Below, in pieces: positions 941-36,848 of a stretch of DNA of 52,609 nt; within the stretch, counting starts at the first letter, position 1; each line of letters opens with the position of its first letter. Source of the stretch: Girardia tigrina. Lineage: Eukaryota. Location of the stretch: contig MQRK01248256.1 in assembly GCA_001938485.1 (NCBI GenBank), positions 9,723-62,331 on the forward strand. The letters run 5' to 3'. The notes below the pieces were generated by a model. That model made no database searches. It was not told the DNA's origin and saw only the letters and a list, made by a program, of their open reading frames with translations. Made by a program: the position numbers and the translations under genes.

Positions 941-1501
941 TTAAACTTTTTTCCAATATTTATTTCTTTTTTTTGACAGAATATAATTGGACAGGAAACC
1001 GTATCTCCACGATATTTTAGGCTGAGAATAATTATTTTGTTTACGATAATTGCTGTTTTTAAATTTATCGTCATTGATACTCAGACAATTTTTAACGAAG
1101 CAATATAAAAGGTTGTGAGGGCAATAAGCTGCACCGGCGCTCAATAACAGTTGACAAATTTGATAGTTTCCACAAGAAACCGTAAGATCCAATGGTGTGA
1201 GGCCAGTTTCTTTATCGACAAAATTCACTTCGCAATTTTTATTCATCAATGACTGAACTATTTGCTCGTTCTCATTCCAAACNNNNNNNNNNNNNNNNNN
1301 NNNNNNGTGCAAGCCATCAGAATCAAGATCGGCACCCTTTCCAATCAGAAAGTTGACGGCAGAGACATTTATTCTCTCACAAAACACACGCAAAGGATAA
1401 GACATGTCAGAACAATATATTTTTGCCTCCTTTGCAATTTTATCGGCAATCTTTAAACGTTTAAGAATATGATCAATTTCTTTTGAATTTAATACTGACA
1501 T
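941..1501 (-). CDS. Short ankyrin-repeat protein (about 3 repeats), apparently intronless; contains a 25-nt N gap
   Basis: ORF contains VNFLIGKGADLD, IVQSLMNKNCEVNFVDKETGLTPLDLTVSCGNYQICQLLLSAGA (TPL..G...LL..GA ankyrin consensus). C-terminus uncertain. Confidence 0.7.
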   Translation of the reverse strand: MSVLNSKEIDHILKRLKIADKIAKEAKIYCSDMSYPLRVFCERINVSAVNFLIGKGADLDSDGLHXXXXXXXXVWNENEQIVQSLMNKNCEVNFVDKETGLTPLDLTVSCGNYQICQLLLSAGAAYCPHNLLYCFVKNCLSINDDKFKNSNYRKQNNYSQPKISWRYGFLSNYILSKKRNKYWKKV

Positions 1502-3042: not shown

Positions 3043-4111
3043 AGAAGTTCGGGTCGGACACTCCCTACACCGATGTGAGGTGTGGGGCGGCGACCGCGGT
3101 AAACTGAAGCGCTGACACTGTTGTTGAGGCGACGTTGACGGATGCTCGGCCCGAACGCGGAAGTCCCGACTGTTCCCACATTGACTCGAGATGATGGTCC
3201 AGGTCTATGTCGCCGTCGGTGAACGGACAGACATCCTCTCGCTCGACTACATATTCCTAAACATAAAAGAAAAAAAACGAAGGGACGAATTGTTGAACCA
3301 ACCGAATTTAGATGGTGGATTTACGAACAGAAAGGGGCGACCATCACGCCCAATCGGCCAACATTCACAACTGTGAATCATAAGTGATCCGTTTGTCAAT
3401 TGATTATCGGTCGATGTGTGGGACATTCTATTGGCAAACTCGGCCAGCATTCCAAGATCGATGTTCGTGACTCCGTTGACGATTTTTTGGCCGTCCGGTG
3501 GAAGCGATGAGACAAAGAACGTGCGGACGATTTGCTCATTGTCTTTGGTGATTGCAGGCTTGATTGATTCGAGATCGCGTGCGCATTTCGATAGATGTTC
3601 CGACGGTTTATCGTGTTGCGCAATCGGATGAGACTGGAAATACGAGCGGATGATGTCGTCCGGCTGTGAGTGGTAGTGGTCGATTAAAAGATCCTTGAGC
3701 TAGATGTAAGGGTCGAAAGACAGATGCTTGGAGAAGATCGTCCGACAGGAGTTTGAGAACGGGTTCCGGGAGGTATGAAATTGTCTGGTAGAATTTGTAG
3801 GGAGATGAAAATATGTAGAAATCGAATTTCGCTTCGAGAATTCGAAACCAGGATTTCGGGGAACCCGATTTGTTAAGAAAAAAACGGAAGTTCGTCCATT
3901 TGGTTTTTTAGTAGAAAAATGACGAAGATTTTTTTAAATTGTGATTATTTAAACAAGTATTTTTATTTTGTTTTTTTTTAAATATTAATTTTCTAATTTA
4001 TTCTCGCTCCACATCACCGCCACCCATTTACTTTTTCGATCAATCCGTTCACATTTTTTTTATCATTTTTGTTATTAAAAAAATTATTTTTATTTTTTTT
4101 AATTCACTACA
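3043..4111 (-). mobile_element. Non-autonomous retro-like element, copy 1, carrying a degenerate Ty3/gypsy Gag-like ORF
   Basis: Minus strand reads GGGGGGC|TGTAGTGAATT (PPT-like tract, then LTR-like start at 4111). ORF from ATG 3899: MDELPFF..SPKSWFRILEAKF..YKFYQTISYLPE..DPY.*LKDLLI..DKPSEHL..RTFFVSSLP..LAEFANRM, with one frameshift and one stop; this follows the gypsy capsid pattern as I recall it. Both flanks are shared with 35727-36848. Confidence 0.65.
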
Positions 4112-10000: not shown

Positions 10001-11670
10001 AAAGAAGTACAATAAGAATGTATACTCAAAAAAGAAAAGAAGTGAATTGATTTTCCAAAACCAAATTATTATGTCTAACGAGAACTGAAAGATATATCAT
10101 TAAATAAAAGATAAGTTCAAGGTGGAGGAAATTTATGTCGATGAAGACAAAAAAAGAAGTAATTTAATTAACATTGAAAGAAACATTTGACAAAGGGTAC
10201 ATAAACATTTGCTCCCATAGCGAGGAGCAATATTCAATGATAAATACTTTGGTAGGTCATGTTAGAAAATACATGATGTAGATGGCGAATGAACAAAAGG
10301 ACGAGGACAGAACAATAATATCAATTCTAACAAAATAGAAAGTGGAATTCGGAGACTCGAAAGACGTTCACGTGGACAATGGAAAGAATTTTGAAACAAA
10401 TATGATGCAAAAGATGATGAGAACTTAAGGCATATACTTGGTACCTTAAAGGTGATACTATGGTAACATTGACAGCGTTGAGGAAGAGGAATCATGGGAT
10501 ATACCGACATTCTTTAGAATAGTATTAAAGAAAGGAAGAAGACAATCAAAGCCAAGATGTTATTTAAATTGACAATTAATACAGCATACCATATGTCAAT
10601 TAACAGATACTCAGAAGAAGTTATGTTTGAAAGATAAATATATAANNNNNNNNNNNNNNNNNNNNNNNNNNNNNNNNNNNNNNNNNNNNNNNNNNNNNNN
10701 NNNNNNNNNNNNNNNNNNNNNNNNNNNNNNNNNNNNNNNNNNNNNNNNNNNNNNNNNNNNNNNNNNNNNNNNNNNNNNNNNNNNNNNNNNNNNNNNNNNN
10801 NNNNNNNNNNNNNNNNNNNNNNNCCAAAACCATAATCCTAATATTAATTATATTAAGTCTACGTCTATTCTTCCTTTTGTTATTCAAATCGTCCAATATA
10901 TATTGTATATATATATATATATATTTATTAAATATATTTAATACTTTATTTATATTTAAAATGATTTTATTGTTATTTTTAATTGTTCTTTGTTCAAACA
11001 AATGTAATTATTCAATGAAACTTTTTACCTTTAACAAAACAAGTTCTGATTGTTTTGCATTTTCTATGAACGATCCGACTTCATGTCTACATTCCTCCTC
11101 CTTTCCTTTCAACCAGTCTATTTCCCGTCTATTCTTCTCCAGGATCGTCTTCAAGGAAGACATCTCAGATACATAATATTCGTTCTTCTCTTTCATTTCA
11201 TTCCTTAGATTATTTATTATTTCAATTAAGAAGTGATTGTCGCCGAGATTCTTGCTCCACAAAGTCTCTTCTTTTCTCCTTTCCTCAACTTCTTTTTCTG
11301 GTTTCTTTTTCTCTGTACATTTTTCCAAGTGAGATTCCATATTTGCTAGTTGATCTTTATACCCACAACCTTTTTCGTCACATCTTGCAATTAATTCCGA
11401 TATTTTCTGATTTTTACTGGAATTTATTTTTATTTTGTTTAAATTAGTTGCTTTACATTTCTCTGTGTCTCCGGAACAAAACGTTCTTCCGTTTCTTAAA
11501 GACGTTTTGACGCATTCTTCACAAAAATTGCATCCGCAATCCGCTTCAAACGCGTTTTTGAGAACGGATTTACAAATTCTGCATTTTAATTCCTCTTTTA
11601 CGTCGCTGATTATCGTCAAATTATGCTCCAATAATAATTTATAAATATTATTTATATTTTCATTCATCAT
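7098..11670 (-). CDS. TRAF-like protein (RING, one TRAF-type zinc finger, coiled coil, MATH), 3 exons, about 442 aa
   Basis: Exons 11670-11029, 7830-7687 and 7640-7098; both introns GT-AG and phase 0, joining without stops. RING CRIC..CGCNFCEEC..C; zinc finger CDEKGC..HLEKC; MATH motifs FEWDI, YKMRMKL, NDYSLQWPF. Confidence 0.85.
8900..10620 (+). mobile_element. Decayed Ty3/gypsy pol remnant inside TRAF intron 1
   Basis: RT motif IYIDDILIAA at about 9241; integrase-like DNGKEF at about 10375; many stops and frameshifts. Confidence 0.75.
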
Positions 11671-14999: not shown

Positions 15000-17800
15000 A
15001 AGAGACATCTAAACTCCCCCTAGCAGTTAGATCTGCAATCATAAAAGTCAGATGTGTTTCTTGAGTACCTATCGCTTCTTCCACCGCCGTCGAGATAGTC
15101 GGGCGGTACGTCACGGATTGAATCTGGTTGCCTGAAATTTTGAGGTTTTCTACAACTCTTTCTTCTGTGTTATTTGTTGTACTGGTTTGCGCTGGTGTCA
15201 TTGTCGGCTCTCCAATTTCTTCTGTCTCCTCCTATTTATGATCCCGGTAGAGGATCAGCTACCCCTTCGTTGTGTACAACTTTTTACATAGTGTACACGA
15301 TAATGGCAATTGCTGTTGTTGTGTCTCGTTGAGCTATTCAGGATTAGCGGAAGTGGATATTGTGTGGTCCCTTTTCATGTGTCTGTTCAGCTCCTTCTTT
15401 TCGGCAAACTCCTTGTAGCATCTTTCTACTGGACATTGGTGACGTTTGTCTCTCTCGTTGATCACTTCTGCACAGTTGTTCTTGTCCTATTGAGTCTTCC
15501 TGATCGAATTAAGGAGTTTATGTATTTTTCCCTGGATACAATAGGACCTCTGTGAATGATGCGGTTAATGAAATCTCCATAGACTGCATCAGCCCCAAAT
15601 AGCCACTGTATGTCCACTCGAAGGCATTCCAAAATTGATTGCTTCCTTCTCCCACTGATCTTTTTCCCCATTTATATTTCTCCCCTCCTGATTCGTTTGA
15701 TTGTCTCATAATCCTCTGAAGTTTCCGTCTTACTGTGTAAAGTTAGCCTTTTACTCGCAAAAAATTTTGAAACAAAACTTTAAACACCTAACCTGTGTTT
15801 TTAATGATCAACCTTTTTTAATGATCATTTCTTTTTCATTTGAGAAACTTTCTTTTTGTTAATTTTGCATGTTATATGACTTTAAATTTAAATTTTATAA
15901 TTTTTTTCTTTTACTTTTGTGTATTTAATTTCCATATTTTTCAAACATTTTCTACCTGGTTACCGATGTCCTAACAAAGATCATCAAAAACCTGGTATTT
16001 CCTATTGTAAATTGACTTTATCCAGATTTATCCTTTGACCTGATTCTTTGATTTTCCAAAAAAAAATTCTTCCCTCGTCAATATCCACCATCTTGATTGG
16101 ATTCAATTACAATAGTGTAAATCAAAATCTCCTTCTTAAACAATTGGGTGAATAGGCTATGTATTGACGGCCTAGTTTTTCATGATTTATTTTTTATTGA
16201 TTTGATATTATCATCGCTTTCAGCAATGTTGATTTTTCAATATAATAGTAATAATTGCAAAAATAATTAATGGCTGCTTGAAGTAAACTCTTCAAATGAG
16301 GACTGTGAAATGGGAAACCTTTTATTTTATTATAAATACAAATATCATGTAATGAATATTACAGAGTAAATAACTCTATCGCTTCTCATAAACATAACAT
16401 AAGAAATGTGTCTTCCCAAGTCATCGACGGAACAACAACAGTTGCTTCATCCATCTATTTCTACGTGCTCAAGTTGGTTTTACGGCAAGACTCAATTTGG
16501 TTTATACAAATTAATTTACTACTCTCTACCAGATGTTTATAATATCAAAAGAGGAATTCCCTCGTACAATAATTGGTGGAATCTTTGGTTATATCGGATA
16601 TTTTCAGACAAATCTAAGCAAACCCCGCGACCTTTTTCTATATTCCTTATCTTAAGTTTGAACAAGTATCACATGCAACGTAATAAAGGTCGAATTGTGC
16701 AATATAAAATAGAGATAGCTTTCATTACAAAATACTTCAATTTAGTAAAATATGATTACATCACGTTTATCATTGTTACATGTATTACAAAAATACAAAT
16801 ATTATAACCATTCAATCTTTGACCTTATTGAAGTTTTAAGTTATTAAAATCATTCTAAACAGCGGTCAGATATTAAATAATTACGAGTTATCGTCCACTG
16901 ATTCTTGCTCAGACTCCATTTATTCAAGCCTCTCCAAAAATGAGAAATTATAATTGAAAAAAAAATATTTTAGTTTTACTTACATAAAACTATCTTCTGT
17001 TGAATGGTGCTGCAGAAACATCAAGCAAAAGTAATATCTATAAATAAAAAAGGAAGACATTCGGCATATACCCCTTCATATAGACTTATAAAACATGAGA
17101 AGGTTTATTATATCACATTTATTTCATTTTCGAGTTGTTTTGAGTTTGAATTAAAAATACTTGTAATTCAACGTCATAAAACTTGTTCCGAGTCTTAGGA
17201 TACCAGGGGAAGATGTAATATCTCTAGGGATATGAAATAATTAATTACTGATGATGGTCAATTGAGATAGAAATATATTCAAAAATAGATTTAAAACATA
17301 TTCTTCGTCAAATATTTAAAAAATATCAAGTTATTCTTCATCAGATTGTATATTTCTCGTAATCCGGATCTCTGGGAACTATAATAATGTATCTGGAGTA
17401 GACTAATTCTGGATTACACAAATTATTAGGAATCATTCACAAATAGAGAAATAAAGAAAGAAATTTATATTCACGAGATAATTATTAAATAATTTCTTTA
17501 TTTCTTTACTTTTACTTGAAAATTCATCCGGAGTAAACCAATTTCCAGATTATTCGCATCCAGATCACAGAATTTTCATTATATGGAGCAAACCGAATTT
17601 TTAATCGGGACTTAATATTTTATCCGATTTAACGATTTTCCGGAGTGAAATATCTAAGAAGATTCAACAATATTTGATTAACTGATTCTGAATTTTTTGA
17701 TCGGTCCTGTTTCCAGTTATCTTCCTTTCGATCGATAGTAATTACTTATTATTTACGTCTTAGCCTTTACCTGACAGACTTTCTCGTTTTCTGTAATCGA
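15000..17800 (-). mobile_element. Decayed gypsy-like retroelement remnant ending in C2H2 zinc fingers
   Basis: Weak RNase H-like (TNYCTRE) and integrase zinc-binding-like (YSGYLG..C) traces, then HQCPVERCYKEFAEKKELNRHMKRDH (about 15365-15442) and a second, broken finger CTLCKKLY. Confidence 0.4.
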
Positions 17801-18184
17801 ACTTCAACTATCGTTTTCTTCTTCCGTCCGTTATTTGTTTGTAATAATATAATTATTATACAATTCTTGTTAAATTTTTCTTATTTAATAATATAAAAGA
17901 AGAACATGTAGAAAATGTATTCTGAGTGATTTCGACTGTATATATAATAAAATTTTGAATATTACACTAAAAATAAAAAGTTAGCAATGGTCGAAGGTAT
18001 TTATATTATTAAATACAAATGTAATGTTAATTATATCATTCATATTTTTAACTTTCAAACTTTTATAATTTATTTTTATTAATTTGCTAAAATATTCTAA
18101 AATATCACAATTAAATTAATTTTTAGTGTCCAAATTATCGTTTTAGAGTTTCGTGAAATAAAAGGTAATGAAGAAGTTCCTATT

Positions 18185-18757
18185 TCAAAAAAGTGTTTTC
18201 TTTTTATAATCGACGTCGTCATTGTGTTGTGATCGGACGCATTCGTTATTGAAACTTGCTTCGTTTAATAGTCGAACAATATGGATATGACCATGTGATT
18301 CAGCAAAATGAATGGGTCGTTTTTTCTGAATATCCATCAATAAGTGATTTATTAATGGATAAAGAATTACGTGGTCGTCTTCACATTCGATTTCACATTT
18401 TGAGTCAATCAATTTTTTAACAATATCTTCATAACCCTTTGAGGCTGCGTAATGAATCGGACGTTTTTTCTAAATCTTTTTTGTGATTACTCTTTATTTA
18501 TAAATAATAAAATACATTATCGCTTTTACATTCAACATTGCATTTCATGTCAATCAAAATGATAATAATATCGATATGACCATGTGAGGCAGCATAATGA
18601 ATTGGTCTCCATTTCTAAACAAAACATAAAATTTGATGTCTTGTCAACAGTAAATTACATTTTTGTCTTCGCATTCTATATCACATTTAGACTCAATCAA
18701 TAATCTAACAATATCGGTATGACCTTTTCTAGTAGCCAAATGAATCGGTCGCTGTTT
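18185..18757 (-). repeat. Ankyrin exon cluster 5 (3 repeat exons plus terminal exon)
   Basis: About 144-nt period; introns 44, 46, 45 nt. Confidence 0.92.
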
Positions 18758-21700
18758 CTGAATATTTAATATTAATTTATTTATTTATCAAAATTCATTT
18801 TAAAATTTGAAAACAATAACATGCCTTTATAAACATTTATAATGTGAGGAGCTTTAATTTTTATAAATAACTTTTAAAAGAAGAAAATATCTAAAATTCA
18901 AGGTTTTGGAAAGAATTATTATTAAAAATATCTCTAATTAATTTTAAACAGTTATTTTCAAGAATAATTTAATTTTATTTGTTAAAACTTTAAGTTGAAA
19001 TTAATTGTCAAATAATTGATTTTAAAATAATTAATTCAAAAAAAATATGGAAAGTCAATGAAAATTATGTTTTAAATTAATTTTAAGTTATTCTCAAAAA
19101 AAATTAATGAAATTTTTGATTGATAGAAATGTAATTTTTAAAAGCAAATAATTGTTAAATATTAAAGTTGTTAGAAATTTTGTAAATTAATAATTTGATA
19201 AATATTTAAATTTTAATCAGCTTTTTAAAAAATAAAACAACCATTAAAAATTTATAATTAATATAAATTTTAGAGTATAACAATAAATTTAAATATTCTA
19301 ACTAACAATTCTATTTTTTGTATTTAAATTATATAAATATTAAATGGTTTTTAAATTAAAAACATTTAAATTAATAGAAATCGTTGTAAACTTGCTAAAA
19401 TACGTTTTTAAAAAGGATGTAAAATAAAAATTAAAATATTAAAATTTTAATCTATAAAATTAATGTAATACAAAAAATAATAAATTCAATTTTTAAAATA
19501 ACGTTTTTATAAATAACTTATCAGTACTTATAATCCAGTATTTTTATGTATAATTAATCTGGTCATAAAGAAAACAAAAGAAAAGTTCCTCAAGAAAAAT
19601 TGTTTAAATAATTGTTATTGTGATCGAAATAAAGTTTTGTGATAATGAATTCTATTCTTGATCAAGAATCCAACATATAACATTCTTCATTAAATGATCA
19701 AAAGTCTTCCAAACGATATATACCTTGAACGTTGAGTTATAAACTTGACAGAACGGTGCTGCTATTTACTATCTATGACCAGAAAAATTCAGCCACAATT
19801 TTCGATGGACTCATATCAAAAGTAAACCACATGATACAGAATTTCAATCTTTTATCCGTTTCCATTGACTTTGAAAAAGTTCGTCAATTTATAAAGAGAA
19901 CTAATGCTCTATCGAAATATATTTGTTAAAGTATAAATTTATTTTTGTCATAAAATGGTTTTCTATTGTTTTCAAACATTATTGGCTTTTGTTTATTTTA
20001 AATCGTAAATTACATATGCATTTTCACATTCGATGTTGCATTTTGCTTCAATCAATATCCGTACAATATCGATATGACCATTGGAAGTAGCAGAATGAAT
20101 CGGTCTCCATTTCTAAATATGTCTAGAATAACTTAAGCTTCATTGTCAATTAATTACGTTATTATTTTCACATTCAATATTGCATTTCGATTCAATCAAT
20201 AATTTAACAATTTCTTTTTGACCATTTTCAGAAGCAAAATGAATTGGTTTCCATTGCTAATTATTTTTAAAATAAATAATGTGTCATTAACAATCGATTA
20301 CATTTTTAGTTTCGCATTCGATGTTGCAATTGGATTCAATTAATAAATTAACAATGTCTTCATGACCCTTCTCAACAGCACAATGAATCGGTCGTTTTTT
20401 CTAAGTGTTTGACAATGAATATTTTCTTTATCAAAATCAAATACCTGATAGCTTTCACACTCAATATTACAATTTGATTGAATCAATAATATAACAATAT
20501 CTCTATGACCATTTGATGCGGCATAATGTATCGGTCTCATTTTCTAAATATCATATAATAACTATATTAATCACAATAAAAAAGCATTTCAGTTGTAAAT
20601 AGTTATGAAAAATAGTTATACAAAAAATACTATTAATGATGTAATGTAATTAAGTAATAATTTGTTTTAATTAAATATTTTATTAAATGTAACAATGTAA
20701 TAAAATTTAATTAAAAAAAGTTGTAAAAAATACTAAAGTAAAATCAATTTGTTAAGACACGGGTAAAGGAGAAACACTTTCCTTTACTCTACTACTGTGC
20801 TCAACAAAAGAAGACAATAAATCTTCTATTAATTTGTTTAATCTCCTATGGAGTTTATTAAATGAAATCTTCCTTGGTTTTAATTATAACAAATAATCAA
20901 TATCAATTAACAATAATGTAAGACGATAAGATTTATTTATAATATGAACAATATTATACAATTTATTTGAAATGAAATAAAAATATAAAAGAATATCCTA
21001 ATGTGAGTTGTAATTAGACCACTTCGAAAACACCGTTTCAAAGCGTTCTATATTTTGATAAATACCGATTACTAGTTTATTATAAATTTAAATTACTGAT
21101 TTTATTTAATTAAATAATTTAGTGTAAAAAGAAAAAGAGAATTCAATAACCTCGTGCTTCCAGACTTGTCGAAAATAACGTGCAAAATAGACTTCTAGAC
21201 TTATCGAAAATAAACGTGCAAAATAGAATTCCAAAATTTCCCCGTCAAAAATAAACGTGCAATTGAATTCCAAATTTCTAATAGACTCGTAAACTGGTCA
21301 AGAGAATGATCTGTAAAAGATTATATGATTTCCTTTTTTAAGAAAAAATTTATTACCTGTAAAAGATAATATGATTTCGTTTTTAAGATGCTTAATCAAT
21401 TATTTTATATTATTCAAAAAGATGCGTGGCTTAATGTTGGTTACGCGTATAAGATAATAAACTATGGATGCGTGGCCTAGAAAATAAGAATGGTCGTACG
21501 CGAATCACGGAAATAAACGCGTGGTTGTACAAACGCGTGGCTTACGCGAAAAATAGATTATAGGTCTTTTAAAATAATCTTTTGACCTTTAAAACTTGTT
21601 CTTCTTAATATTATCTTTTAAAATATAAATAATAATATAATATTACCCATTCTAAAATATAAATAATAATATAATATTACTTATTTTCTTTTAAATATAA

Positions 21701-24700
21701 ATAATAATATTACGGTAAATAACAAATCTTATTATTTACTAAAAAAAATATACTGTCAGCAAGCACAGGAAAATAATAACAATTTACAACTATCAAATAA
21801 TAAACTATTTATTTATACTTTCAAGAACAATTAATTAATAAAATAGTTCATGTACATTCCCCAACAAATTAACATATATAAATACATTTTAATTAAAATA
21901 TGTCAAGGCTTTACATACAACTGTAAATATATAATATGCACAATATAACTTTATGCATCAAATAAACATAACTTTTTTTACATCGAAAAGTTTTTTAATA
22001 AACCTTTTAAATATTCTGTAGTGTTACAAACTTCATAGTTTGGAACTATTCTCAAAATTCTTGCTTCAGCTTCAGGATATTTAGTTCTTTTGAGGCTGGG
22101 TTGATCTCTCATACATTTTATAAAATATTTGATTAAAGTAAAATTTTATTACATTTATACATTTAATGCCTATACTTGATAAAACTAAAATTATATTACA
22201 TTATTACATTTAATGAAATATTTGATTAAAACTAAAATTTTCTTTAATAAAATTTGTTGCGGTGCCCACAGATGCGTACTCTCTTTCAGGAAAGGCAAAT
22301 AATTTTGATATAACAAATAAAAAGCGGTATAAGTTCAGTCTCTTGATAGGATAAAATTCTATTTGCCTTTATTATAACAGCAACACCTAATTCATAAATC
22401 ATAATTTTAATTTTTTATTCGAATTAAAGTATTTGAATTACAATTCCATAGCAGGAATCGATATTGCCCTGAAATTATAATTCGAATTTTAATTATTAAA
22501 TTTATTATTACACATATTGTTGTTTAATGTGATTCATTATTTCATACGTTTGTTTAAGTCAGCTGTTTACCTATTGAGAATTTCATTTAAATATATCTTT
22601 TTGCTCGTCGCGCTTGTTATTTACGCATATTATTATAATTATTATACAGTTGATACGAATGTCACCCATCTGACTACGACCGCATAAATTTAAGGTCCAT
22701 CAGACGGAACTAACAACCAGATGATAATATGATAAATATATATGATAAATTATGCATATGATGTTATTTATCTAACAGAAGAAAGCATTATTGATATCAT
22801 TTTCTGAATAGTATGTAATAAATAATCTTTTATCAATATCAATTTACATTTTTGTCTTCACATTCGATATCACATTTCAAATCAATCAATAACCTCAGAA
22901 TATCGGTATGACCATTTGATGCAGCACAATGTGCGGGTCTCCAACCCTAAATAATAATTAATAACTGGTTTACTTAACAATTATCAATCACAAAATTGTT
23001 TCTACATTCGATATTGCAATTTAACTTAATAAATAATCTAACAATATCTATGTAACCATTTTCAACTGCAAAATGTATCGGTCGCATATTCTGAATATTT
23101 GACGTTAATTGATTTTAATGTCCATCATCACATACGTAATTATCTTGACATTCGATGTCGCAATTTAACTCAATAAATAATCTAACAATATCTATATTAC
23201 CATTTTCGGCAGCGAAATGAATCAGTCGCTTTTCCTAGACAATTATTATTTCAAATAATTGATGTATTTGTGAATAATAAATTACAAAAGTATTTTCACA
23301 TCCGATAATGCATTTCGATTCAATCAATAATTTAACAATATCAATATGACCATTTACTACCGCACAGTGAATTGGTCTCATTTTCTGAATTTATCAATAA
23401 TTTTTCGAAATATCAATAATAATTTACATATTTGTCTTTGCATTCAATATCACAATTTAATTCGATCAATAATTTAGTAACCTCAATATGACCATTGGAC
23501 GAAGCATAGTGTAACGGTTCCTTTTTCTAAACCATTTAAATATCTGATATGTATTTCCTTTAACTACATTTTTTTGAAATATATAAAATCCATTTTTTTA
23601 AATTTATTTTGACAGTTGTTTTCGTTATTTGCAAAAATTCAAAATAATTTAAACAACTTTTACTCAAATATAATTTATTTATATTCAACGAAGTCTTTAC
23701 CAGAAAGACGATATTTCAAAGAAAAATTTTAATCTTTGTTATTTGAAAATTATAAATGAAATAATATTATTTAAAATATGACGATAATGAATTTTTAAAA
23801 GTCAAAAATATTTCGTCAGAATATATTGTGATTAATTTCGACGGATTAACCGTCATCATCAGACTTAATTAACAATGATATACTCGTGTTTATATATCAA
23901 AGCAATGTTTATATAATCATTATGTCATTTAAATCATGAAAATACTTTCAATAAAGTTGAAGAGGTTGATGTTTGGACATTGATTTTAGGATCAAAAGAT
24001 TTGATCAACAATTTGATCCGTCGAAATTAATCACAATATATTCTGACGAAAATTTTTTGACTTTTAAAAATAATATTATGATGCCTTATTTGTTTCTAAA
24101 ATGTGTAGTGGACCTTTTTATTTTATGAATTGTCTTATGGTATCGCACAAAGTTGAACATGAATTTTCCTATCATGTCTTTATCTCATCGTCTCTAATAA
24201 CGTTTCGCCATTAAGTATGTCCTGTATATCCTGGTATCCACATGATCCTTACTTACAACACCTAAATTTTCTATAGCCAAAGACTTGATGACTAACAAGC
24301 AGCTTCTTCAAAAGATTATTGTAGTGTGAGGTTTTTTGTGGCCCAGCAAACCAAAAAAAAACATTCATAAATTCAATCCATGATCTTATTTCTGTCCTTA
24401 TTCTTTTTCCTATCAGAATTTCTGATACAAACATTTTCTTCCCCTGTAGACCGATAAATGCAGCTGCATCCAATTTATCATAATAATTTGGGAAACATGG
24501 ACCTTGAAACATTCACCGTTTTGAAATGGTATTGAGACAAACTTTTTTATTAATCCAAGTTTAATATACACGGTGCGGCAGCTATTTGAGAACAAAATGA
24601 CATAAAGTTCAAAAAATGAATATACAACAGAAAAATAACATTTATTACAATTTATAATTTTACATATATTAACACGTACATAAAGGACTANNNNNNNNNN

Positions 24701-27700
24701 NNNNNNNNNNNNNNNNNNNNNNNNNNNNNNNNNNNNNNNNNNNNNNNNNNNNNNNNNNNNNNNNNNNNNNNNNNNNNNNNNNNNNNNNNNNNNNNNNNNN
24801 NNNNNNNNNNNNNNNNNNNNNNNNNNNNNNNNNNNNNNNNNNNNNNNNNNNNNNNNNNNNNNNNNNNNNNNNNNNNNNNNNNNNNNNNNNNNNNNNNNNN
24901 NNNNNNNNNNNNNNNNNNNNNNNNNNNNNNNNNNNNNNNNNNNNNNNNNNNNNNNNNNNNNNNNNNNNNNNNNNNNNNNNNNNNNNNNNNNNNNNNNNNN
25001 NNNNNNNNNNNNNNNNNNNNNNNNNNNNNNNNNNNNNNNNNNNNNNNNNNNNNNNNNNNNNNNNNNNNNNNNNNNNNNNNNNNNNNNNNNNNNNNNNNNN
25101 NNNNNNNNNNNNNNNNNNNNNNNNNNNNNNNNNNNNNNNNNNNNNNNNNNNNNNNNNNNNNNNNNNNNNNNNNNNNNNNNNNNNNNNNNNNNNNNNNNNN
25201 NNNNNNNNNNNNNNNNNNNNNNNNNNNNNNNNNNNNNNNNNNNNNNNNNNNNNNNNNNNNNNNNNNNNNNNNNNNNNNNNNNNNNNNNNNNNNNNNNNNN
25301 NNNNNNNNNNNNNNNNNNNNNNNNNNNNNNNNNNNNNNNNNNNNNNNNNNNNNNNNNNNNNNNNNNNNNNNNNNNNNNNNNNNNNNNNNNNNNNNNNNNN
25401 NNNNNNNNNNNNNNNNNNNNNNNNNNNNNNNNNNNNNNNNNNNNNNNNNNNNNNNNNNNNNNNNNNNNNNNNNNNNNNNNNNNNNNNNNNNNNNNNNNNN
25501 NNNNNNNNNNNNNNNNNNNNNNNNNNNNNNNNNNNNNNNNNNNNNNNNNNNNNNNNNNNNNNNNNNNNNNNNNNNNNNNNNNNNNNNNNNNNNNNNNNNN
25601 NNNNNNNNNNNNNNNNNNNNNNNNNNNNNNNNNNNNNNNNNNNNNNNNNNNNNNNNNNNNNNNNNNNNNNNNNNNNNNNNNNNNNCGTAAGAGTAGCTTC
25701 TGCCATGTCTACCAGCAAAAATAAAATTATGTAATTATAACACACAAAAAGATATGGTGTCTATATTACGTGTTCTCAAATAGCTGCCGCACCCTGTATA
25801 GTGATGGAAGGAAGAACTTTTTGGACATGAACTAGAGAATTATGTTTCACATTCAAATTTCCAGGACGCAAATCATCTTTAGGGGACCATTACTTCCCAA
25901 TGTAGTGATCTGCAGTATCTCTGCTATTCCACAGACACAATAAATAAGAATATTTAGTAAAATTACTCCAGAGTCCAAATAAAAACCCCAACATCTTAAA
26001 ATCTTCACATACATCAAAATTATATTAATCATAATTGATCCTCAATAGTAAACACTTAACATTATCAAAGTTTTCTTTCAAATGAACAGAGTGGCCCACG
26101 TGAATTTATAGATGTTCGTTTCCGTTGTGTAGTAGTAACGCTTTTAAAATTACACTGAACTATCAATAAAAAAGCTACTTGCTAGGTTAAAATGTAGTTC
26201 TCATCTTTTAAAATAGTTTTTTTTATATTTGAGAAGTAACAAAGTGACTCCTCCCTCAAAAGAATTGAGCATAGAATATACACAGTTTTTGATACTTAGA
26301 CGTCGATTAATACGTCGACAGTAAGATGATTCCATTCTTTCAGTTTTGATACTAGGAGTTCATTAACCCATTTATGAAGAATCAAATCTCGTACTACACC
26401 ATTGGGCTACCACATCCAATGGATATAACTGCATGTAAAAGACTCACGTTCCATTGCAAAATGGAGTCCGCAGAGACGATCATACTTCAGACACTGTGGA
26501 GTGCAAATATACCAATTGGAAAGAAGATCAGTGGACCCTCTAAAGAGTCTAGTGGCTCAATACCATTCGAAAGAGATTGGAGGCCCACAACACCATTAAC
26601 TGCTTCCTGGTTAGAAAAAGGAAGTTCAACTAGTGACTTAGCTAAAAAATCATCATCATCGTCGCAATTACAGTTATCATGAAAATCATGCTTATCATCG
26701 TAGCCGCTACAAATATCAGTCCAAGGAACAAGAAACAGAAGCAGAAATCGATACAGAAGAAGCAATCATTTTAAATAATATTATGATTTTTAAATAATTT
26801 TATTGGTTTGCAAAATGCATTTAATGACTTGCAAATGGTATAAATTGAAAATATTGATGATTTGGTCTAAGGAATAATTTTTCGGAAATCAGAAAAATTA
26901 TTGACCAAAAGACAACTGTCGAATAATATATTTTAAATTGGATTGTATTTATCTTAATAACATTTTTTAATAATACTACAAATTTTACATTTTTGTTTTT
27001 TATTTTCATCTGGCAGTTTGACTCAATCAATAATTTCACAATGTCGACGTGACCCTTTTCAGCAGCACAATGAAGTGGTCGCTTCATCTTAATATTTAAT
27101 ATTAATACATCTATTTATAAATTATCAACAACATAATTATCTTCACACTCAATATTGCAATTTGATTGAATTAATAATCTAACAACATCAATATGTCCAT
27201 ATGATACGGCGTAATGAATCGCTCTCCACCTCTGAGTATTTTAAAATAACTGCATTTTATCAGTAATAAATTACAAATTCATTTTCGCTTTCGATGTTGC
27301 AATTTGATTCAATTAATAATCTAACAATTTCTAGGTGACCTTTTTGAGTAGCATAATGAAGCGGTCGCTTTTTCTGAAAGGATTGTAATAACTCATTTTT
27401 TATCACTACTCGATTACAGTACTGTTTTCACATTCGATATCACATTTTGATTCAATCAATAATCTAACAATATCGACATAACCATTAGAAGCAGCACAAT
27501 GAATTGGTCTTGATTTCTAAACACTTCGAATAAGTGATCTCAAATCAATATTCAATTACATTATTGTTTTCACATTCAATGTTGCAGTATGATTCTATTA
27601 GTAATCGAACGACATCGACATGGCCATTTGATGCAGCACAATGTATTGGAGTTTTTTTCTAAAAGTTTTTAAATAGTTGATGCAAGATATTAAAAAGTTA

Positions 27701-29871
27701 AATAATGTTTTTATTAAATTAAGTAAATTATCGTATAATACACAAACTAAAGGTGACAAAGAACAGAATATATATATTTATATTTATAAATTTTTAGCTG
27801 CAGTAAGTATGATTTATTATGCCGCATTTGTATAATTGCCAAATTCGTGAATTAGGCAATTTTTGCCGAAAAATTTTTTTTAATTCATTTATGAAAAAAA
27901 TATGTATTTAATATGAAAAAAATCAATTTAATATGAAAGAAATATGCATTTAATATGAAAAATAATCTAGTTAATATGAAAATAAGGTTTTAACAATACA
28001 CATTTGCAATTCAGCTTACCACCCAGGAAGAATTTTAAATAACTATGAATAAATTTTACATTTGGAGTCTATTTGGCATAATAAATTAAGATTTTTTTCA
28101 AATTTAATTTATATTTTTTAATATTAAATTGATTTTTTCATATTATATTGATATTTTTCAAAATAAATTGATAATTTTTTATATTAAATACATATTTTTT
28201 CATATTTGAATATCATAAATACATAATTTTTCATAAATGAATTTAAAAATTTTTTTATTCGGCAAAAATTGCCTAATTCCCGAATTTTGCAATTATACAA
28301 ATTCGGCATAACTGATCATACTTACTACAGATAAAAATTTATAAATAAATTTACCAAGGACCAAAACGGCGGTACAAAAACGGTGGTACGAAAACGGTAT
28401 GTACCCGCTTTAATATATTAATAATATTTAATATAAATAAAATGTAAATTTCCCCAATTTAATGATTCAGAAACATTCAATGAACAACAAGATATCAATA
28501 AATTTGTTACGGACCAAAAAAGATTTTTTGAAATATCAGGACATCTAAAATGTCTTTTGGGGAAGGATTGTTGGTCATTGATGATTTGAAGATTTCGAAA
28601 AATGAATTTCTGAAATAAATTTCTGATGAACAGATAACCATCAGCAGTTATTCAGGACTTCAGGAATCGTTATGTCTACAAGAAGGGAAATCACTCTGTA
28701 GCACGCTATTTCCAGAAAACAAATAAAATGAATTAGAAACTGCAGTTTTATGAAAGGAACAAAGGAGAATTAACTTCCTATTTTATGGTTGATTATGTGA
28801 AAAGATTCGGATTCAAAGATGATTTAGTATAAACCATATTCTCAACCCTGGGATACAATTGCCTATTTTTAAAAGAATATTTGGTGCTGTCAGAATAAAA
28901 TGTCTGACATCTTAGTGTATATCCTGTTTGACATATTTTTCAATTTTAAGACCCTTCAAAAATCTATCATCCCCTTTTCATCGACATTCCAATTAATAAT
29001 TTCATAACTGAGCATTCTTATTTTGCCCATTTCAAGTACTTGACCTTTACATTTTACATGTTTTTACATTTGAAAAATCCATGCAGAATTAACAAACATA
29101 AATTCATATGGACAGAAACTTGTTTCGAAGTCATTTTGAAAGAAAAGCTTCATGAAATTCACTTATTTTGGTTTACGTAGATTTTAAGAAGGATTTTATT
29201 TATGATACAGGTGCTGGTTTTGACATAATTGGAGCTGTTCTGTCTTAAGATAAACATAAAAAGAAAGATTAATTACAAACATTCTGTAGGAAACTGTTTT
29301 CTTCTTCACATAAAGATTAAACTTAAACTTCACTAACGAAAAGTATATATGTCCATTAAATATACATATCTATGAAATAAGGTAGGTACTATACTAGCCC
29401 CCGATTGAAAAGTGGAACGTTGTTGTGTTATTTGTTTACTGTCTGTTTTTTTCTTGATTAGTTCTACTCTTCTCAGGTTGACCAAGTTTTCTTCTCGATA
29501 TTGCTATTTCATTGAGAATTATATGGCGTTGTTCTCGTTTTTTTATGTTGTATTTTTTAGAGGGTTCTCATACAAACTTGGATTTGAATTGGTTCCCCAG
29601 ATTAAAAACGATTTTTCGGGGTAGACCCTATATGTGAATTCATTTTTGCTCTAGATTCTTGTAGAATTAGTTGGCAAATATTTCTGTAGTGTCCATTATT
29701 ACAAAAAATTAATAAACAAAAATTAAAATTAATTTATTTAACAAAAATTCAAATTAAGTTATTAGACAAAAACAAATTATGAATATTTAAAAATATTCAA
29801 TATATATATATATATATATATNNNNNNNNNNNNNNNNNNNNNNNNNNNNNNNNNNNNNNNNNNNNNNNNNN

Positions 29872-29907
<36 letters not shown>

Positions 29908-32900
29908 GATATATTTACAAAAATTAATATATTAAAATAGTATGAGGATTTTTTGTTTAAACGAAGAAAAAAGGAACCAGATTTGAAAAGCGTTAAAAAA
30001 TGGTGTTATGAACTATTTTCTCATATATATTTTTGTGGACACACCATTTCGCTGAAATAAATATTATTCGTTCATTTTGTTTCTTCATTATTTTTCAAAC
30101 ATCAATCAATGACGGACAATGACGGGAATACCGAGTGGGTATCTCCCACGCGAAGCCACTCGATCGGATGGGTCTTTTCATCGGAATCTAGAGGCCGTGG
30201 CCACCTCTTAAAATATCGAACAGATGTCGGTGTGCCACCGATGGAAGTAAATCAACCGTGAATTAATACTTTATTGCGGCTCGTAATTTTAGTCCCGTCG
30301 CGGTATCTCAGTGGGTAACACAATTCAGTGTACATGAAAAACCGTTATATTAATTTCTTTTAACGAGAAAGCTTCAGTTCAATTTGAATAACTTCCTATA
30401 ATTGTTAAATGGAATTTATGATTCTTGTTTGGTAGCCCTAAAAATGTGTATTGTTTTAAAGTTTTTGCACTCCTCTAAAAAAATTATCTCACCTTTGATT
30501 TGTTTTGTAATTTTATTAATGTTGCAAATTTTCCAAAGGAATCTCTTGTTCAAGCTTTTGAGACTTAAATGAACAAGACTCCGGACAGTGTTCCCGCCAG
30601 AACTTTTCTTTAGGGGGGAAAACAGAAAAAACATGGGGGGGCGAAACATGATCCGGAGTCTCCGGTTAGATTCGAAGACTACGGTTTGCAAGTTTAGAAT
30701 ATTTCGTCGTATTTTACTGATAACACAAATGTGAATTTCGGCGTTTGATAGAGTGACTCAGTCTGTCTCTTCGTCAAGTTCAGAAACTTTACTGAATGGT
30801 ATCGTAAAATCGAGGCAATGGCGATACTGCTCAAATGGCGGGCTTCGATTTGATTTCCGGGTTACCGAATTAAAAATAACGGATATTCAAAGCAGAAAAG
30901 GAAGCGCTGCTGAGCACCTATGTTTTGAAGCTGAAGGAGGTTAATAGAGTTCCGATCAAGATTTCTTTGACCGGAAAAGTCCATCGAGAAGTTTCCATCG
31001 AATCGGCGGCACCTCTCGTCAACAGTAAGTCATGAACAAAAGACCCCGAATATTGTCCTGCGACAAGCATTCATTACCAGCCTGAAGGACAACGTTTCTC
31101 GATATTTATCTCCAAAAGCGGTAGGAAAGAATAACTAGTTGGAAGAATTGCTTCTAATGGTATGAGCTTTATTCTGGATAAGCAGACGAGGCACAGCTTA
31201 TGCGGATATCATTACGATACTAATGATCAATTTCATCAGAGAGCCAGGAAATATAAAGGCAGCTGACATAAATACAAAAAAAGAAAATTCCAAGCGTACG
31301 ACTTGAATTAATAGAGCCCCAATGCCAATCACATGCGGCGTTTCTTCTGTTATTCGACAGATAATCTCTGCAAAGAATGTCCACGCTGTTAACAACAGAC
31401 GAAAATAGCAAATCTTCACCAATGCGGGAGTGAGATCTCTGTGAGTTATGTAGTATGACAGTATGGCGTCAGATTCATAAGAGAGCAAGTGTGATATATG
31501 TTCAGCCATGAGCAGCGTCTGGTACGATTTAGGGTACTAGAAGTAGTTTGACTGGACAAATAAAGAACCTTTAGAGGATGGAGGGTGTCGGGTCTTCTAG
31601 ATCAGTTTGGAATTGAGACGTAATTTCGGAGTGAAAACTGACAAAGTGAAAATGACATTGTTGAGCGCAATTACCGAACAATCAAAAGGATGAACGCTTT
31701 GTGCAGTAGGGAGGTTCAAAAATTTGAGACGTAGTATAACGTAACCCAAGTGCAAATTGACTCATTCGACATTAATGGTGTTTGCAAAAAAATGATATTA
31801 CTGTTGCCGAAAATATTCAATTACGCTAGGCCAGAACTGTAAACAATGCCACCAAGTTTGGATTTGGTAGCCGGAGACGATGTGTTCGTGAATCCTGTAC
31901 CACCGTACAACTTTATTTTACGATAAAAAGGCAGGATAGTCCAAGAGGTGCGAATGGAACAGAAGTCTGAAGTAAGCGATTTGTCTTATTATGTCAGCCA
32001 CACGTGTCATGCACCTTTGGTGAAAATTCAAATTCATACGAACTCTGAATAAAGCGAGAATTCTGAGCTATATCATCCTATTACTTCGGCCTTTGAATCG
32101 AGGAAACAGAGCTTGAGGAAATTTCTATTCCGTCTGATTCGAATGTTCATGCGCTACAGCACAAGAAGCCGACACGGTTCCTCCAAGTTCAGCGGGAGCA
32201 TGTTTATGTGTTTTAAGGCAGGGGACATGGGGTGTGAGATAAAGAAATAATTTAATCCGATTGAGTCTTAGTTATTTTAGATTATTTTTCAAGACAACTG
32301 TAATTGTGCTCTTTTCTCTCGTTCAATTTTTACGTACTGTACTTCCTTGTACTTGATTGTCCATTTATTTAGAAATTCATTTTAGTGTACAATTTTATTT
32401 TCTAACAGTTTATTTGTTTATCAATTATCAATTACATTTTTGTCTTCATATTCCAAACAACAGTGTGACTCAATCAGTAATCTGACAATATCCACGTGGC
32501 CATTTTGAGCGGCATGATGAATTGGTCTCGATTTCTTAATACATTTAAATAACTTTTTTATATATAATAAATTACATTTTCGTCTTCACACTCAATATTA
32601 CAATTTGACTCAATCAACAATCTCACAATATCGATATGACCGTTGGAGACAGCACAATGAATCGGTCTCCATTTCTATTCCTTTTTAAAATAATGCCATT
32701 TGTGAATAAAAATTTACATAGTTGTCCTCGCAATCAATGTTGCTGTTAGACTCCATCAGCAATTTGACAATTTCTATATGGCCTTTTGTAGCAGCATAGT
32801 GAATTGGTCTTCGATTCTAAATATTTCAAAATTATTTGTGTATAAACAACTGGAAGATCTTGTGATCGTATGACTACTATGCCCATCAAATAAATAAACC

Positions 32901-33069
32901 GACATAGACTAAGGTTAAGTTGACGTATTTGTCTTTGGTCCCTTCAGACAAGTACGTCTTCACGGTTTCTGCGTCGCCACTCGTCAGAGCATTCACAAAC
33001 AATTCGTCATTATTCTCACTTTAATTATTAACTTAAAAATTAATTTTATTTAATTAAAACTTACTCCAT
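18185..33069 (-). CDS. Long ankyrin-repeat protein: myotrophin-like N-cap, 20 single-repeat 99-nt exons, terminal exon (about 746 aa)
   Basis: Exons 33065-33069 (ATGGA) and 32904-33018 (donor somewhat uncertain). 99-nt exons: 32718-32816, 32576-32674, 32436-32534, 27560-27658, 27418-27516, 27275-27373, 27133-27231, 26989-27087, 23428-23526, 23286-23384, 23136-23234, 22992-23090, 22848-22946, 20445-20543, 20302-20400, 20158-20256, 20014-20112, 18659-18757, 18516-18614, 18371-18469. Terminal exon 18185-18325. All repeat exons are AG/GT-bounded, phase 0 and stop-free. Consensus KxRPIHxAxxNGHxDIVRLLIESNCNIECEDxx. Confidence 0.9.
19730..19930 (+). mobile_element. MULE transposase remnant in ankyrin-gene intron
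   Basis: VLLFTIYDQKNSATIF..NFNLLSVSIDFEK resembles the MULE K..Y..F..DFE motif. Confidence 0.45.
20014..20543 (-). repeat. Ankyrin exon cluster 4 (4 exons)
   Basis: 99-nt exons; introns 44, 45, 45 nt. Confidence 0.92.
22848..23526 (-). repeat. Ankyrin exon cluster 3 (5 exons)
   Basis: 99-nt exons; introns 43, 51, 45, 45 nt. Confidence 0.92.
23786..24077. mobile_element. Foldback MITE with about 60-bp inverted repeats
   Basis: TTTTAAAAGTCAAAAATATTTCGTCAGAATATATTGTGATTAATTTCGACGGAT near 23790 is reverse-complemented at about 24017-24070. Confidence 0.75.
24100..26760 (-). mobile_element. Decayed DNA transposase, probably CMC/Chapaev3-type, interrupted by a Tc1/mariner insertion
   Basis: With the insert removed it reads NVKHNSLVHVQKVL..LPSLYIKLGLIKKFV..NGECFK, matching the LPPLHIKLGLMKQFV motif. 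Family assignment is from memory. Confidence 0.55.
24569..25796 (-). mobile_element. Tc1/mariner-superfamily element (CAGGGTG-type ends), interior unsequenced
   Basis: 26-bp TIRs CACGGTGCGGCAGCTATTTGAGAACA / TGTTCTCAAATAGCTGCCGCACCCTG (1 mismatch); TA on both sides; about 1.2 kb. Strand tentative. Confidence 0.85.
26989..27658 (-). repeat. Ankyrin exon cluster 2 (5 exons)
   Basis: 99-nt exons; introns 43, 44, 43, 45 nt. Confidence 0.92.
27777..28351. mobile_element. Long foldback element (palindromic MITE)
   Basis: More than 120-bp imperfect inverted arms (CAGTAAGTATGAT..GAATTAGGCAATTTTTGCCGAA vs TTCGGCAAAAATTGCCTAATTC..ATCATACTTACTAC) with internal TTAATATGAAA subrepeats. Confidence 0.8.
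28440..32400 (+). mobile_element. Decayed LTR-retrotransposon fragments in ankyrin-gene intron
   Basis: Protease-like FIYDTGA near 29200; GC-richer broken pol-like sequence 30400-32200; purine-rich tract GGGGACATGGGG followed by TGTGAG at 32233 (PPT/LTR-like junction). May be more than one element. Confidence 0.5.
32436..32816 (-). repeat. Ankyrin exon cluster 1 (3 exons)
   Basis: 99-nt exons; introns 43, 41 nt. Confidence 0.92.
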
Positions 33070-34616: not shown

Positions 34617-35649
34617 TAATCTAAGACATCCTCTTTTAAAAGGGACTCCGGAAAAAATGTCTTGATGTGCTTAAAATACTTCGTTAATTCGAGTATTCCT
34701 CTTTCGCAACCTCAGTTGTAATGAGGTTGACCAAGCACTCTACTTTCTGATGCTGCGAAATATCAGAAAATGCCGTTCTTGTGATACTCTTTCGGACGCT
34801 TTGTTTGACCTTGCTGAAAACCGCTTCGATCGGATTCAGGAAAGGGGAGTACGGAGGAAGTTGCATAATTTCCAAGTGATTTGGGGTTGTTATTCCCAGA
34901 TGTATAGAAGCATTATCGTGGATAATGTAATGCTTACTTTCGGGCAATTTTGCGATGAGTTCACTAATGAAGTTTTGATAAACCTCCCGATTAACGAAAC
35001 CACTTACCATTTTGTAATGGACGGGTCCTTTCTTCGATATTGCCATTATTAAACTCTGGTTCCTCCTTCTATTAGATGGAACTGTCGCGTAGATCCTGGT
35101 TTCCTTTCTTGACCGCCCAGTAGTTTTCCGAGTCCAGAGGTTGAAGCCCATCTCATCCACATAAATATATTCTTTTGAAGAAATTGCTTTCTTCAAAAAT
35201 TGGTGGACATATTGTGACCGTAGTTCCTTCACCCGATCACTATTGCGCTGCTCCACAATATTTCTCACCTTCTTCACCATATAAAATCTTCCATCCAAGA
35301 ATCTGGCGATTGTTGAGGTGGAACAGGAAAATCCAATACTGTCGATTAAATATTGCTGCATTTCTTTTAATGTAGCTTCTGGATGCTCTTCTATATAATC
35401 CATGATTTTTATTGCTGCATCCTCCTTGATGATATATTTCTTTTGGCCACCGATATGCCCAGTTGATATTTGTCCTGTTTTTCGGAACCTGTAAATGATT
35501 CCGCGTACGGTGCGCCGATTTAACCCCAATTGATTACCAAAGAGGTAATAATCTTCCTCCATTTCGAAGGCGTTGATTATCCTTCTTTTATCCACTTCAG
35601 ATACCCTAATAATTAATTCAAACTTGATTATAATTGAAAAAAAATACAT
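34617..35649 (-). mobile_element. IS630-Tc1-mariner superfamily DDE transposase, near-intact, frameshifted near the C-terminus
   Basis: HTH regions plus YVDEMGF, HDNASIH, LPPYSPFLNPIE. After the stop at 34684 a shifted frame continues LTKYFKHIKTFFPESLLKEDVLD*. TIRs not identified. Confidence 0.9.
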
Positions 35650-35726: not shown

Positions 35727-36848
35727 TGGAGTGAATTAAAAAAAATCAAATCAAAATAATTTTTTTTAAATAACAAAAAAAACGATTAAAAAATAAAATT
35801 GTGAACGTATTGATCGAAATGTAAAAATAAAAATTCGAGCGAATAAAAAATTAGCAAATTAATATAAAAAAATACACTTGTTTAAATAAGCTCAATCTTT
35901 ACAAAACTCGAACTACATAATCAAAAAAAACAGTTAAACTCTAATCATGCCCGACTGTGAAACCGAGACATTCGCCTTTCTGGCCGAAATCGCCCAGTTG
36001 ATGAGTCTAATCATCAACACGTTCTACTCTAACAAAGAGATTTTCCTTCGGGAATTGATCTCCAATTCCAGCAATGCGCTTGACGAAATCCGTTACGAAA
36101 GCTTGACGGATCCATCCGTGCCCGTCACCGCCAAAGAACCAATGATCAAAATCATCCCGGAAAAAGATGCTGACACTCTCACTCTCATCGACACAGGAAT
36201 CGGCATGACGAAAGCCGAGCTCATCTAAAATCTTGGAACGATCGCTAGATCTGGAACCATAGCCTTTATGGAGGCGCCGCAAGCCGGTGCCGACATCTCG
36301 ATGATCGGTCAATTCGGTGTCGGTTTCTATCCACCGTATCTGGTCGCCGACAAAGTTCAAGTGATTTCCAAGGGCAACGACGGCGAGCGGCATCTGTGGG
36401 AATCGTCCGCGGGCGGTTCGTCCACCGTCAAATCCGACAACAGCGAGCCGATCGGCCGAAAAACGAAAGTCATTTTATGCATGAAAGAAGACCAAATCGA
36501 ATATCTAGAAGAACGGAAAACCAAATACGATGGGCCGTTTGGGCGTGATGGCCGCCCCTCTGTTTGAAAATCCGCCATCCCAACTCGGTTGGTTGAACGA
36601 TTCGCCTCTTCGCTTTTTTCCTTTTACATTCAGGAACGTGTTACCGAGCGAGAGGATAGTTGCCCGTTCTCCGACGGCCACAGAGAGCTGGACTATCTTC
36701 TCGCATCAATGTGGGAACAGACGGAAGTTCCGCGCTCGAGGCGTGCTTCCGCCAACGTCGACTNNNNNNNNNNNNNNNNNNNNNNNNNNNNNNNNNNNNN
36801 NNNNNNNNNNNNNCGGTGTCTGGAGCAACCGCCTCGTTGAACTTTTCA
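35727..36848 (+). mobile_element. Copy 2 of the element at 3043-4111, carrying an Hsp90 fragment
   Basis: 35727-35890 aligns by eye to reverse-complemented 4111-3945; 36531-36848 aligns to reverse-complemented 3362-3043. Confidence 0.8.
35947..36520 (+). pseudogene. HSP90: Truncated, intronless cytosolic Hsp90 pseudogene (N-terminal ATPase domain)
   Basis: [56 protein letters not shown]. In-frame TAA at 36226-36228, substitutions at conserved sites, homology ends at EYLEERK. Confidence 0.93.

Follow-up and report, generated by a model that had tools for sequence, protein, structure and literature searches.

The 52,609-nucleotide stretch of the Girardia tigrina genome described here (assembly GCA_001938485.1, contig MQRK01248256.1, positions 9,723 to 62,331 of the forward strand; hereafter the window, with coordinates counted from its first letter) contains on its minus strand an ankyrin gene organized as a long series of equal-length exons between two end caps. 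The gene model codes for 746 amino acids and includes an N-terminal cap (N-cap), 20 internal repeats and a C-terminal cap (C-cap), with each internal ankyrin repeat occupying an exon of its own. The main product of the gene is collinear, with rare isoforms possible, and the gene belongs to a large and apparently undescribed family of ankyrin-only genes; at the level of this family, a DNA-level, selection-driven repertoire is supported. RNA contigs from Logan (four runs from three studies, classed as RNA by the tool's guess and spliced accordingly) were compared with positions 17800–23700, and the coding features of the gene are as follows.

33065–33069, minus strand: first coding micro-exon (ATG GA), from the sequence and outside the RNA-compared stretch, followed by a 46-nt GT-AG intron.
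32904–33018, minus strand: N-cap exon with degenerate ankyrin-like helices, 40 amino acids including the micro-exon, from paralogous N-caps; followed by an 87-nt intron.
32718–32816, 32576–32674 and 32436–32534, minus strand: repeat exons e1–e3, from the exon scan, with a Pfam Ank match for e2.
27560–27658, 27418–27516, 27275–27373, 27133–27231 and 26989–27087, minus strand: repeat exons e4–e8, from the exon scan, with e6 and e7 in RNA contigs.
23428–23526, 23286–23384, 23136–23234, 22992–23090 and 22848–22946, minus strand: repeat exons e9–e13, from the exon scan, spliced in order in RNA (run X2, record 11; run X7, record 22).
20445–20543, 20302–20400, 20158–20256 and 20014–20112, minus strand: repeat exons e14–e17, from the exon scan, with the e13–e14 junction in X5 record 15 and the e17–e18 junction in X5 record 13.
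18659–18757, 18516–18614 and 18371–18469, minus strand: repeat exons e18–e20, from the exon scan, with the e19–e20 junction in X2 record 9 and the e20–terminal junction in X5 record 12.
18185–18325 (coding; stop codon 18185–18187), minus strand: terminal exon with a degenerate 21st repeat (the C-cap) and a short tail, 46 amino acids plus stop; RNA contigs of two runs stop at 18140.

The 20 repeat exons are those returned by an unbiased scan for AG–99 nt–GT on the minus strand, which found these and no more, and an array-profile search of the window found no additional 99-nt repeat; the scan thus reproduces the initial annotation, which had described 20 distinct, stop-free, phase-0 exons of 99 nt in clusters of 3/5/5/4/3. 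All 20 are mutually distinct at both DNA and protein level (61–80% nucleotide and 39–79% amino acid identity) and score 59–76 bits each against the array's own profile. Residues H6, A8 and G12 are invariant in 20 of 20 exons, as annotated, the residues it lists at positions 2, 7 and 32 are exactly right, those at position 10 also match, and position 33 has six states. Introns within the clusters are short (41–51 nt) and the four between clusters are long (4777, 3462, 2304 and 1256 nt); the 3/5/5/4/3 grouping is a by-product of insertions into these four introns and has no functional meaning. The N-cap donor is unusual-looking, but the same position and codon end are found in five paralogous N-caps, to which the window N-cap is 32–34% identical. 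The terminal exon is present in RNA, and the total of 746 residues agrees with the annotation.

Protein and domain searches were run exon by exon or with exon alignments, and the Pfam Ank match for e2 (32.5 bits against a cut-off of 21.1) places the repeats in the ankyrin superfamily. The repeat profile aligns in register with chains of designed ankyrin repeat proteins (DARPins) and with ankyrin structures, in agreement with the annotated mapping of the variable residues to the DARPin-randomised positions. The overall architecture is also DARPin-like, an N-cap, uniform modules and a C-cap with no other domain, and the terminal exon and stop are confirmed by RNA. No signal peptide or effector domain is seen in the gene model, and the model contains no ROC-COR, NB-ARC or NACHT domain, its repeats being ankyrin; the place upstream of the repeats where a NACHT or NB-ARC domain might lie is taken in the window gene and in five paralogs by the 40-residue N-cap with its own ATG. 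Neither the window gene nor the fetched paralog loci contain a RING motif.

The gene is transcribed, and contigs from three studies join its exons in genomic order. Direct junctions between neighbours are present for e9–e10, e13–e14, e17–e18, e19–e20 and e20–terminal, and in a 969-letter contig exons e9, e10, e12 and e14 lie at exact multiples of 99, as expected with e11 and e13 included. Identical exon spacing is seen in a 1429-letter contig whose run has 3–5 differences per exon, showing that a diverged strain or sister species has retained the exon order. In two contigs carrying e9, e10 and e12, a further 246 and 497 letters upstream include e7 (and e6) sequence; a length of 246 letters can accommodate only one exon between e7 and e9, and the transcript therefore crosses an assembly gap at 24691–25685. 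Continuity from e1–e3 to e4 is based on scaffold order and paralog anatomy. No exon-skipped product of the window gene was seen in the RNA contigs, which lose rare variants and may hide low-level isoforms.

Several candidate departures from this simple picture were considered and rejected. Long joints resembling exon skips are transcripts of paralogs, with one side of only about 20–27 nt and a contig depth of hundreds to thousands against 5–35 for the window gene. Clusters of variants in runs X2 and X7 that suggested gene conversion from e7/e6 into e14/e15 are the contig's own e7/e6 placed on look-alike exons, their true places being outside the compared stretch, and the same contig matches e14 without difference. 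Intron retention is no source of isoforms, as 13 of the 15 short introns contain an in-frame stop, the remaining two cause a frameshift or finish with a stop codon, and retained introns would truncate the protein. The clusters are not separate genes, since RNA spans the 3462-, 2304- and 1256-nt introns and there is a single N-cap and a single terminal exon. Fusion with a downstream RING-TRAF gene or with an ankyrin open reading frame (ORF) at 941–1501 can also be set aside, with the RNA using the terminal exon and both of these having their own ATG. The lone departure is an RNA contig in which e12 and e14 are separated by 53 letters, a spacing that would possibly fit a cryptic donor at 22894 within e13, shifting the frame. 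The great depth of the paralog-type ankyrin transcripts suggests a much higher abundance for some members of the family than for the window gene, contig depth being a poor measure.

The window's own assembly (1.43 Gb in 255,254 contigs, short-read and fragmented) was searched for relatives. All 150 of the scored candidates from the exon-profile search, out of 8328 in total, match, and the paralogous arrays that the initial annotation had proposed to count prove to be numerous: about 85 other contigs carry a window-type repeat (a hand count that includes some allelic duplicates or fragments), and a profile of the N-cap detects 25 such exons. Across the window and 22 fetched contigs there are 377 repeat matches, of which 333 (about 88%) are clean 99-nt exons, the remainder being mostly terminal, 102-nt or N-containing. 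An exon tree resolves an old clade, with the divergent exons of the window gene and one other, and two young clades with introns of about 46 nt or about 71 nt, the tandem unit of one exon and one short intron being 145 or about 170 bp. Six genes of the 46-nt-intron clade have a common N-cap and a common short C-terminal ending, which flank 6, 13, 22, 23, 24 and 25 repeats; one 71-nt-intron array has about 40, and the family range is 6 to about 40. The closest relative of the window gene is assembled twice, 99.8% identical over 2 kb and with equal exon order. The surroundings of the fetched arrays yielded no signalling, RING or membrane domain, and none of the top 150 RING matches directly adjoins a listed array.

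In a library of 1.84 billion proteins the best 150 matches score at most 44 bits, against 59–76 bits in the window array, and the window-type family is absent from these best matches, probably because 41–51-nt introns and 99-nt exons defeat gene callers. A search of the ESM Atlas returned generic ankyrin clusters only, and literature searches found no description of such an ankyrin family in flatworms. Within the young arrays some units are 96 or 102 nt long, and a few are damaged by frameshifts or by loss of an acceptor or donor (contigs L028, L034, L046, L049 and L023); skipping them would keep the frame. In contigs C221494 (761–1054) and C116109 (828–1022) the repeat matches lie about 99 bases apart, with a 154-residue open frame, and these are apparently intronless, processed copies of the family.

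Within a young array the units are 78–94% identical; some are fully identical, and blocks of two to four are duplicated. On the tree, exons from different genes intermix. In 10 of 10 young arrays four-gamete incompatibility is greater between sites separated by 45 bases or more than between sites no more than 15 bases from each other, indicating exchange breakpoints inside exons, such that the exon is the unit of frame and not of exchange; in the window gene the relationship is nearly flat. The two copies of the old paralog have the same exon order and the window gene has the same spacing in three RNA studies; the young arrays are unphased.

Six positions are randomised in classical DARPins, and the corresponding exon positions 2, 10, 11, 30, 32 and 33 were taken as an a priori class, with the register checked by alignment. 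Under a fixed-site codon model the dN/dS ratio (omega) at these positions is 1.95–3.7 in the young arrays (p<=0.01 in 8 of 8), with a framework omega of 0.38–0.8. In pairwise comparisons within the six youngest arrays, nonsynonymous divergence (pN) at the DARPin positions is 0.20–0.32, synonymous divergence (pS) is 0.05–0.11 and intron divergence is 0.025–0.05, and pS within the variable codons is not elevated. As in DARPins, variation is focused on the beta-turn and first helix, both in the young arrays (p=0.0002 against random codon sets) and in the window gene (p=0.003). One subfamily has 88 surface combinations among 99 distinct repeats, and all 15 arrays compared with a simulated gene-conversion null with neutral surface codons lie above its median, the arrays not being independent of each other.

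The window gene itself differs. Its exons have a pS of 0.57 and an omega of 1.07 at the DARPin positions (p=0.47, not significant) and 0.38 at the framework; the rate of evolution at surface sites is about three times that of the framework, and positive selection is not demonstrable in this gene. Concerted evolution and positive selection on the concave surface are thus found in the young paralogs and not in the window gene, which looks like an old and now stable family member. The suggestion in the initial annotation that unequal crossover or conversion could generate a binder repertoire finds support in the paralogs, which vary in repeat number, have duplicated blocks and recombination inside exons, and show surface dN/dS above 1, but is not supported at the window gene, whose exons diverged long ago; the site-wise dN/dS of the 20 exons that it had called for shows the faster surface without demonstrable positive selection. 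Of the three observations it had named as speaking against diversification at this locus (a single constitutive 746-residue isoform, identical exon order across individuals and species, and no nonsynonymous excess at surface positions), two were made, as far as contigs can show.

We regard it as moderately probable that these genes form a DNA-diversified family of cytosolic ankyrin-only binders with the window gene as a stable, old member, and with a putative immune role. The window gene would be constitutively spliced and encode a cytosolic protein of 746 residues, as an old member of a lineage-specific family. Unequal crossing-over and gene conversion between exon-plus-intron units would change repeat number and mix repeat halves, the pattern seen in the paralogs, and because each unit is in frame and in phase its exchange leaves the protein unbroken. 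The alignment places the exon boundary inside the beta-hairpin, each turn consisting of residues 31–33 of one exon and 1–2 of the next, so that reordered units and new neighbours make new turns. In the young paralogs, purifying selection holds the stacking framework and diversifying selection acts on binding-surface residues of the beta-turn and helix 1; arrays gaining a useful specificity may then stop homogenising and age, as the window gene may have. The repertoire would be built in DNA over loci and generations, with no exon choice at the window locus. The solenoid is predicted to bind a target through the DARPin positions, and the proteins may be stand-alone binders, decoys or adaptors. 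The younger members change fastest at the binding surface, a behaviour also known from recognition proteins engaged in host–pathogen arms races. Judged from this evolutionary signature, the most likely role would be to recognise or sequester, inside the cell, non-self proteins that change quickly and come from viruses, bacteria or mobile elements, which would make the family's function an immune one.

Planarian-type invertebrates resist many pathogens and their receptors are poorly known, and the genes of this family are direct candidates for planarian pathogen receptors. If the family reading holds, the design of DARPin libraries has also evolved as a natural animal multigene family, with selection on the positions that engineers randomise. 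The presence of old frozen and young homogenised arrays in one genome offers a clean test bed for the diversification and subsequent fixation of repeat proteins.

A number of points weigh against a diversified binder family. No effector domain in the genes read accounts for events after binding, and the proposed role draws on an evolutionary signature. The 95% bound of the gene-conversion null is exceeded by only 5 of the 15 arrays. Young arrays with units more than 90% identical may be collapsed or chimeric in a fragmented short-read assembly; such mis-assembly bears more on repeat counts and the four-gamete result than on dN/dS. Finally, protein repeats in general are reported to diverge rapidly when new and then to become fixed (PMC5120217).

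This two-phase mode of repeat evolution is the main ordinary reading of the data, and we consider it possible although unlikely. Tandem exon duplication would have produced a lineage-specific family of scaffolds or adaptors for host partners without non-self recognition, in which new repeats diverge fast, under relaxed and some positive selection, and are then fixed, with the window gene as the fixed end state. Surface positions are known to vary in all natural ankyrin proteins. The lack of significant positive selection in the window gene fits this reading, as do the individual failure of two thirds of the arrays against the conversion null and the two-phase pattern reported across life (PMC5120217). 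One fixation episode would nonetheless predict less than is seen in the family: dozens of loci with parallel omega above 1 at the binding positions, the 88 surface combinations in 99 repeats and continuing change in copy number.

It is improbable that the family signal is largely an artefact of assembly and mutation, with collapsed or chimeric arrays and pseudogenes inflating copy number, recombination and dN/dS and only the old genes being real. The fragmented assembly, the N runs in young arrays, the duplicate contigs and the identical exons within arrays all lend themselves to such an error. Chimerism, however, reshuffles variants and creates no nonsynonymous excess at six pre-chosen codons; the great majority of matches are intact 99-nt exons with the others mostly terminal, 102-nt or N-containing, framework omega is below 1, and paralog-type transcripts are deep in the RNA runs. 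We give equally little credence to an adaptive-like repertoire, in which arrays would be recombined in stem cells within an individual, or young genes combinatorially spliced, such that different cells would deploy different natural DARPins against pathogens; somatic array variants, if real, could also be inherited in a fissioning planarian.

Regulated exon choice of the Dscam type at the window gene, with in-frame skipping of 99-nt cassettes giving many binder isoforms, is marginally less probable still: any exon subset stays in frame, the few paralog exons with a lost splice site or frameshift would need skipping, low-level skipping could escape the Logan contigs, and alternative splicing of repeat exons is reported in brown-algal ROCO genes (PMC11378527), but the skipping proposed in the initial annotation is left unsupported by collinear inclusion, with neighbours joined in all informative contigs of the three studies and the apparent skips traced to paralogs, by introns so short that they favour intron definition, which disfavours skipping, and by the lack of apparent docking or selector elements, the intron repeats found being transposon-like.

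The diversified binder family that we favour shares features with several known systems. It resembles DARPins (PMC8683736) in having an N-cap, self-compatible 33-residue modules with a fixed framework and variable surface, and a C-cap, but it is natural and has 6 to about 40 repeats rather than 2–4; its repeats start with K-x-R-P-I-H and have a Cys-containing linker, where DARPins have G-x-T-P-L-H and GADVNA, and position 7 varies too while position 30, randomised in DARPins, is nearly fixed. The internally well-conserved ankyrin arrays of fungal NLRs (Podospora Pa_3_8560 and others; PMC4986451) are the C-terminal domains of NACHT/NB-ARC receptors, and have in common near-identical ankyrin repeats, variation in repeat number, concerted evolution, and positive selection on the inner helix and beta-hairpin; the proteins examined here are ankyrin-only with caps, have each repeat in its own exon, and occur in an animal. 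The brown-algal ROCO-LRR and NB-ARC-TPR genes (PMC3341825, PMC11378527) likewise place single repeats in phase-0 exons of equal length; their exons turn over both inside a locus and among loci, their surface sites are under diversifying selection and an immune role has been proposed for them, but their repeats are LRR or TPR with an attached ROC-COR or NB-ARC domain, and alternative splicing is reported there and unseen here. Arthropod Dscam also has many interchangeable equal-length exons, although these are mutually exclusive alternatives, unlike the joined neighbours of the window gene. Canonical ankyrins and other exon-per-repeat ankyrin genes share the 99-nt repeat exons and long solenoids, but the window gene is without a ZU5, death, SOCS, RING or membrane domain.

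Two introns of the ankyrin gene contain transposon-like insertions, recognized as follows.

27781–28347, strand not assigned: MITE-like insertion (miniature inverted-repeat transposable element) with 93-nt inverted arms, in intron 3, by inverted-repeat anatomy.
24565–25800, strand not assigned: high-copy DNA transposon with 30-nt terminal inverted repeats and TA ends, Tc1/mariner-like by anatomy, in intron 8; holds the gap 24691–25685.
23791–24071, strand not assigned: small MITE-like element with 59-nt inverted arms, in intron 8, by inverted-repeat anatomy.

The left end of the 1.2-kb intron-8 transposon is present in at least 40 copies elsewhere in the genome at 96–98% identity, and the gap inside it is 995 bases long. 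A second gap, of 50 bases (29822–29871), lies in an (AT)n run of intron 3, outside the RNA-compared stretch. An intact-looking ORF for a 321-residue DDE_3 transposase (Tc1/mariner superfamily) is located at 34684–35649 on the minus strand, 1.6 kb upstream of the ankyrin gene start.

The neighbouring parts of the window contain several further genes and gene fragments. A divergent TRAF-like gene, with a RING ORF (11008–11670) and a MATH ORF (7098–7631), both on the minus strand, lies 6.5 kb downstream of the ankyrin gene and on the same strand; a search of the protein database gave no homologs of the two ORFs. Together with low G+C, very short introns and mariner-type elements, this divergent TRAF gene suggests a planarian genome; the TRAF genes of planarians are an expanded group (PMC6109357). 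The ORF at 941–1501 (minus strand), with its own ATG, is of a different ankyrin type, and a paralog of 85% identity (L035, 1–403) is found in another contig 1.2 kb downstream of a young ankyrin-exon array; the two ankyrin gene types are therefore linked at least twice. At 35947–36567 (plus strand) there is a G+C-rich, broken Hsp90 fragment amid the A+T-rich genome, whose right flank (36533–36763) is an 80% inverted copy of 3127–3359. A G+C-rich, frame-broken and apparently intronless WD40 coding stretch (Pfam WD40) at 49541–50361 on the minus strand, which we take to resemble a dynein intermediate chain, adjoins a mariner-type transposase that starts at 50712. Elsewhere in the genome, many RING matches fall in small open frames, 47 or 53 residues long, on dozens of contigs, and represent another expanded small-exon family.

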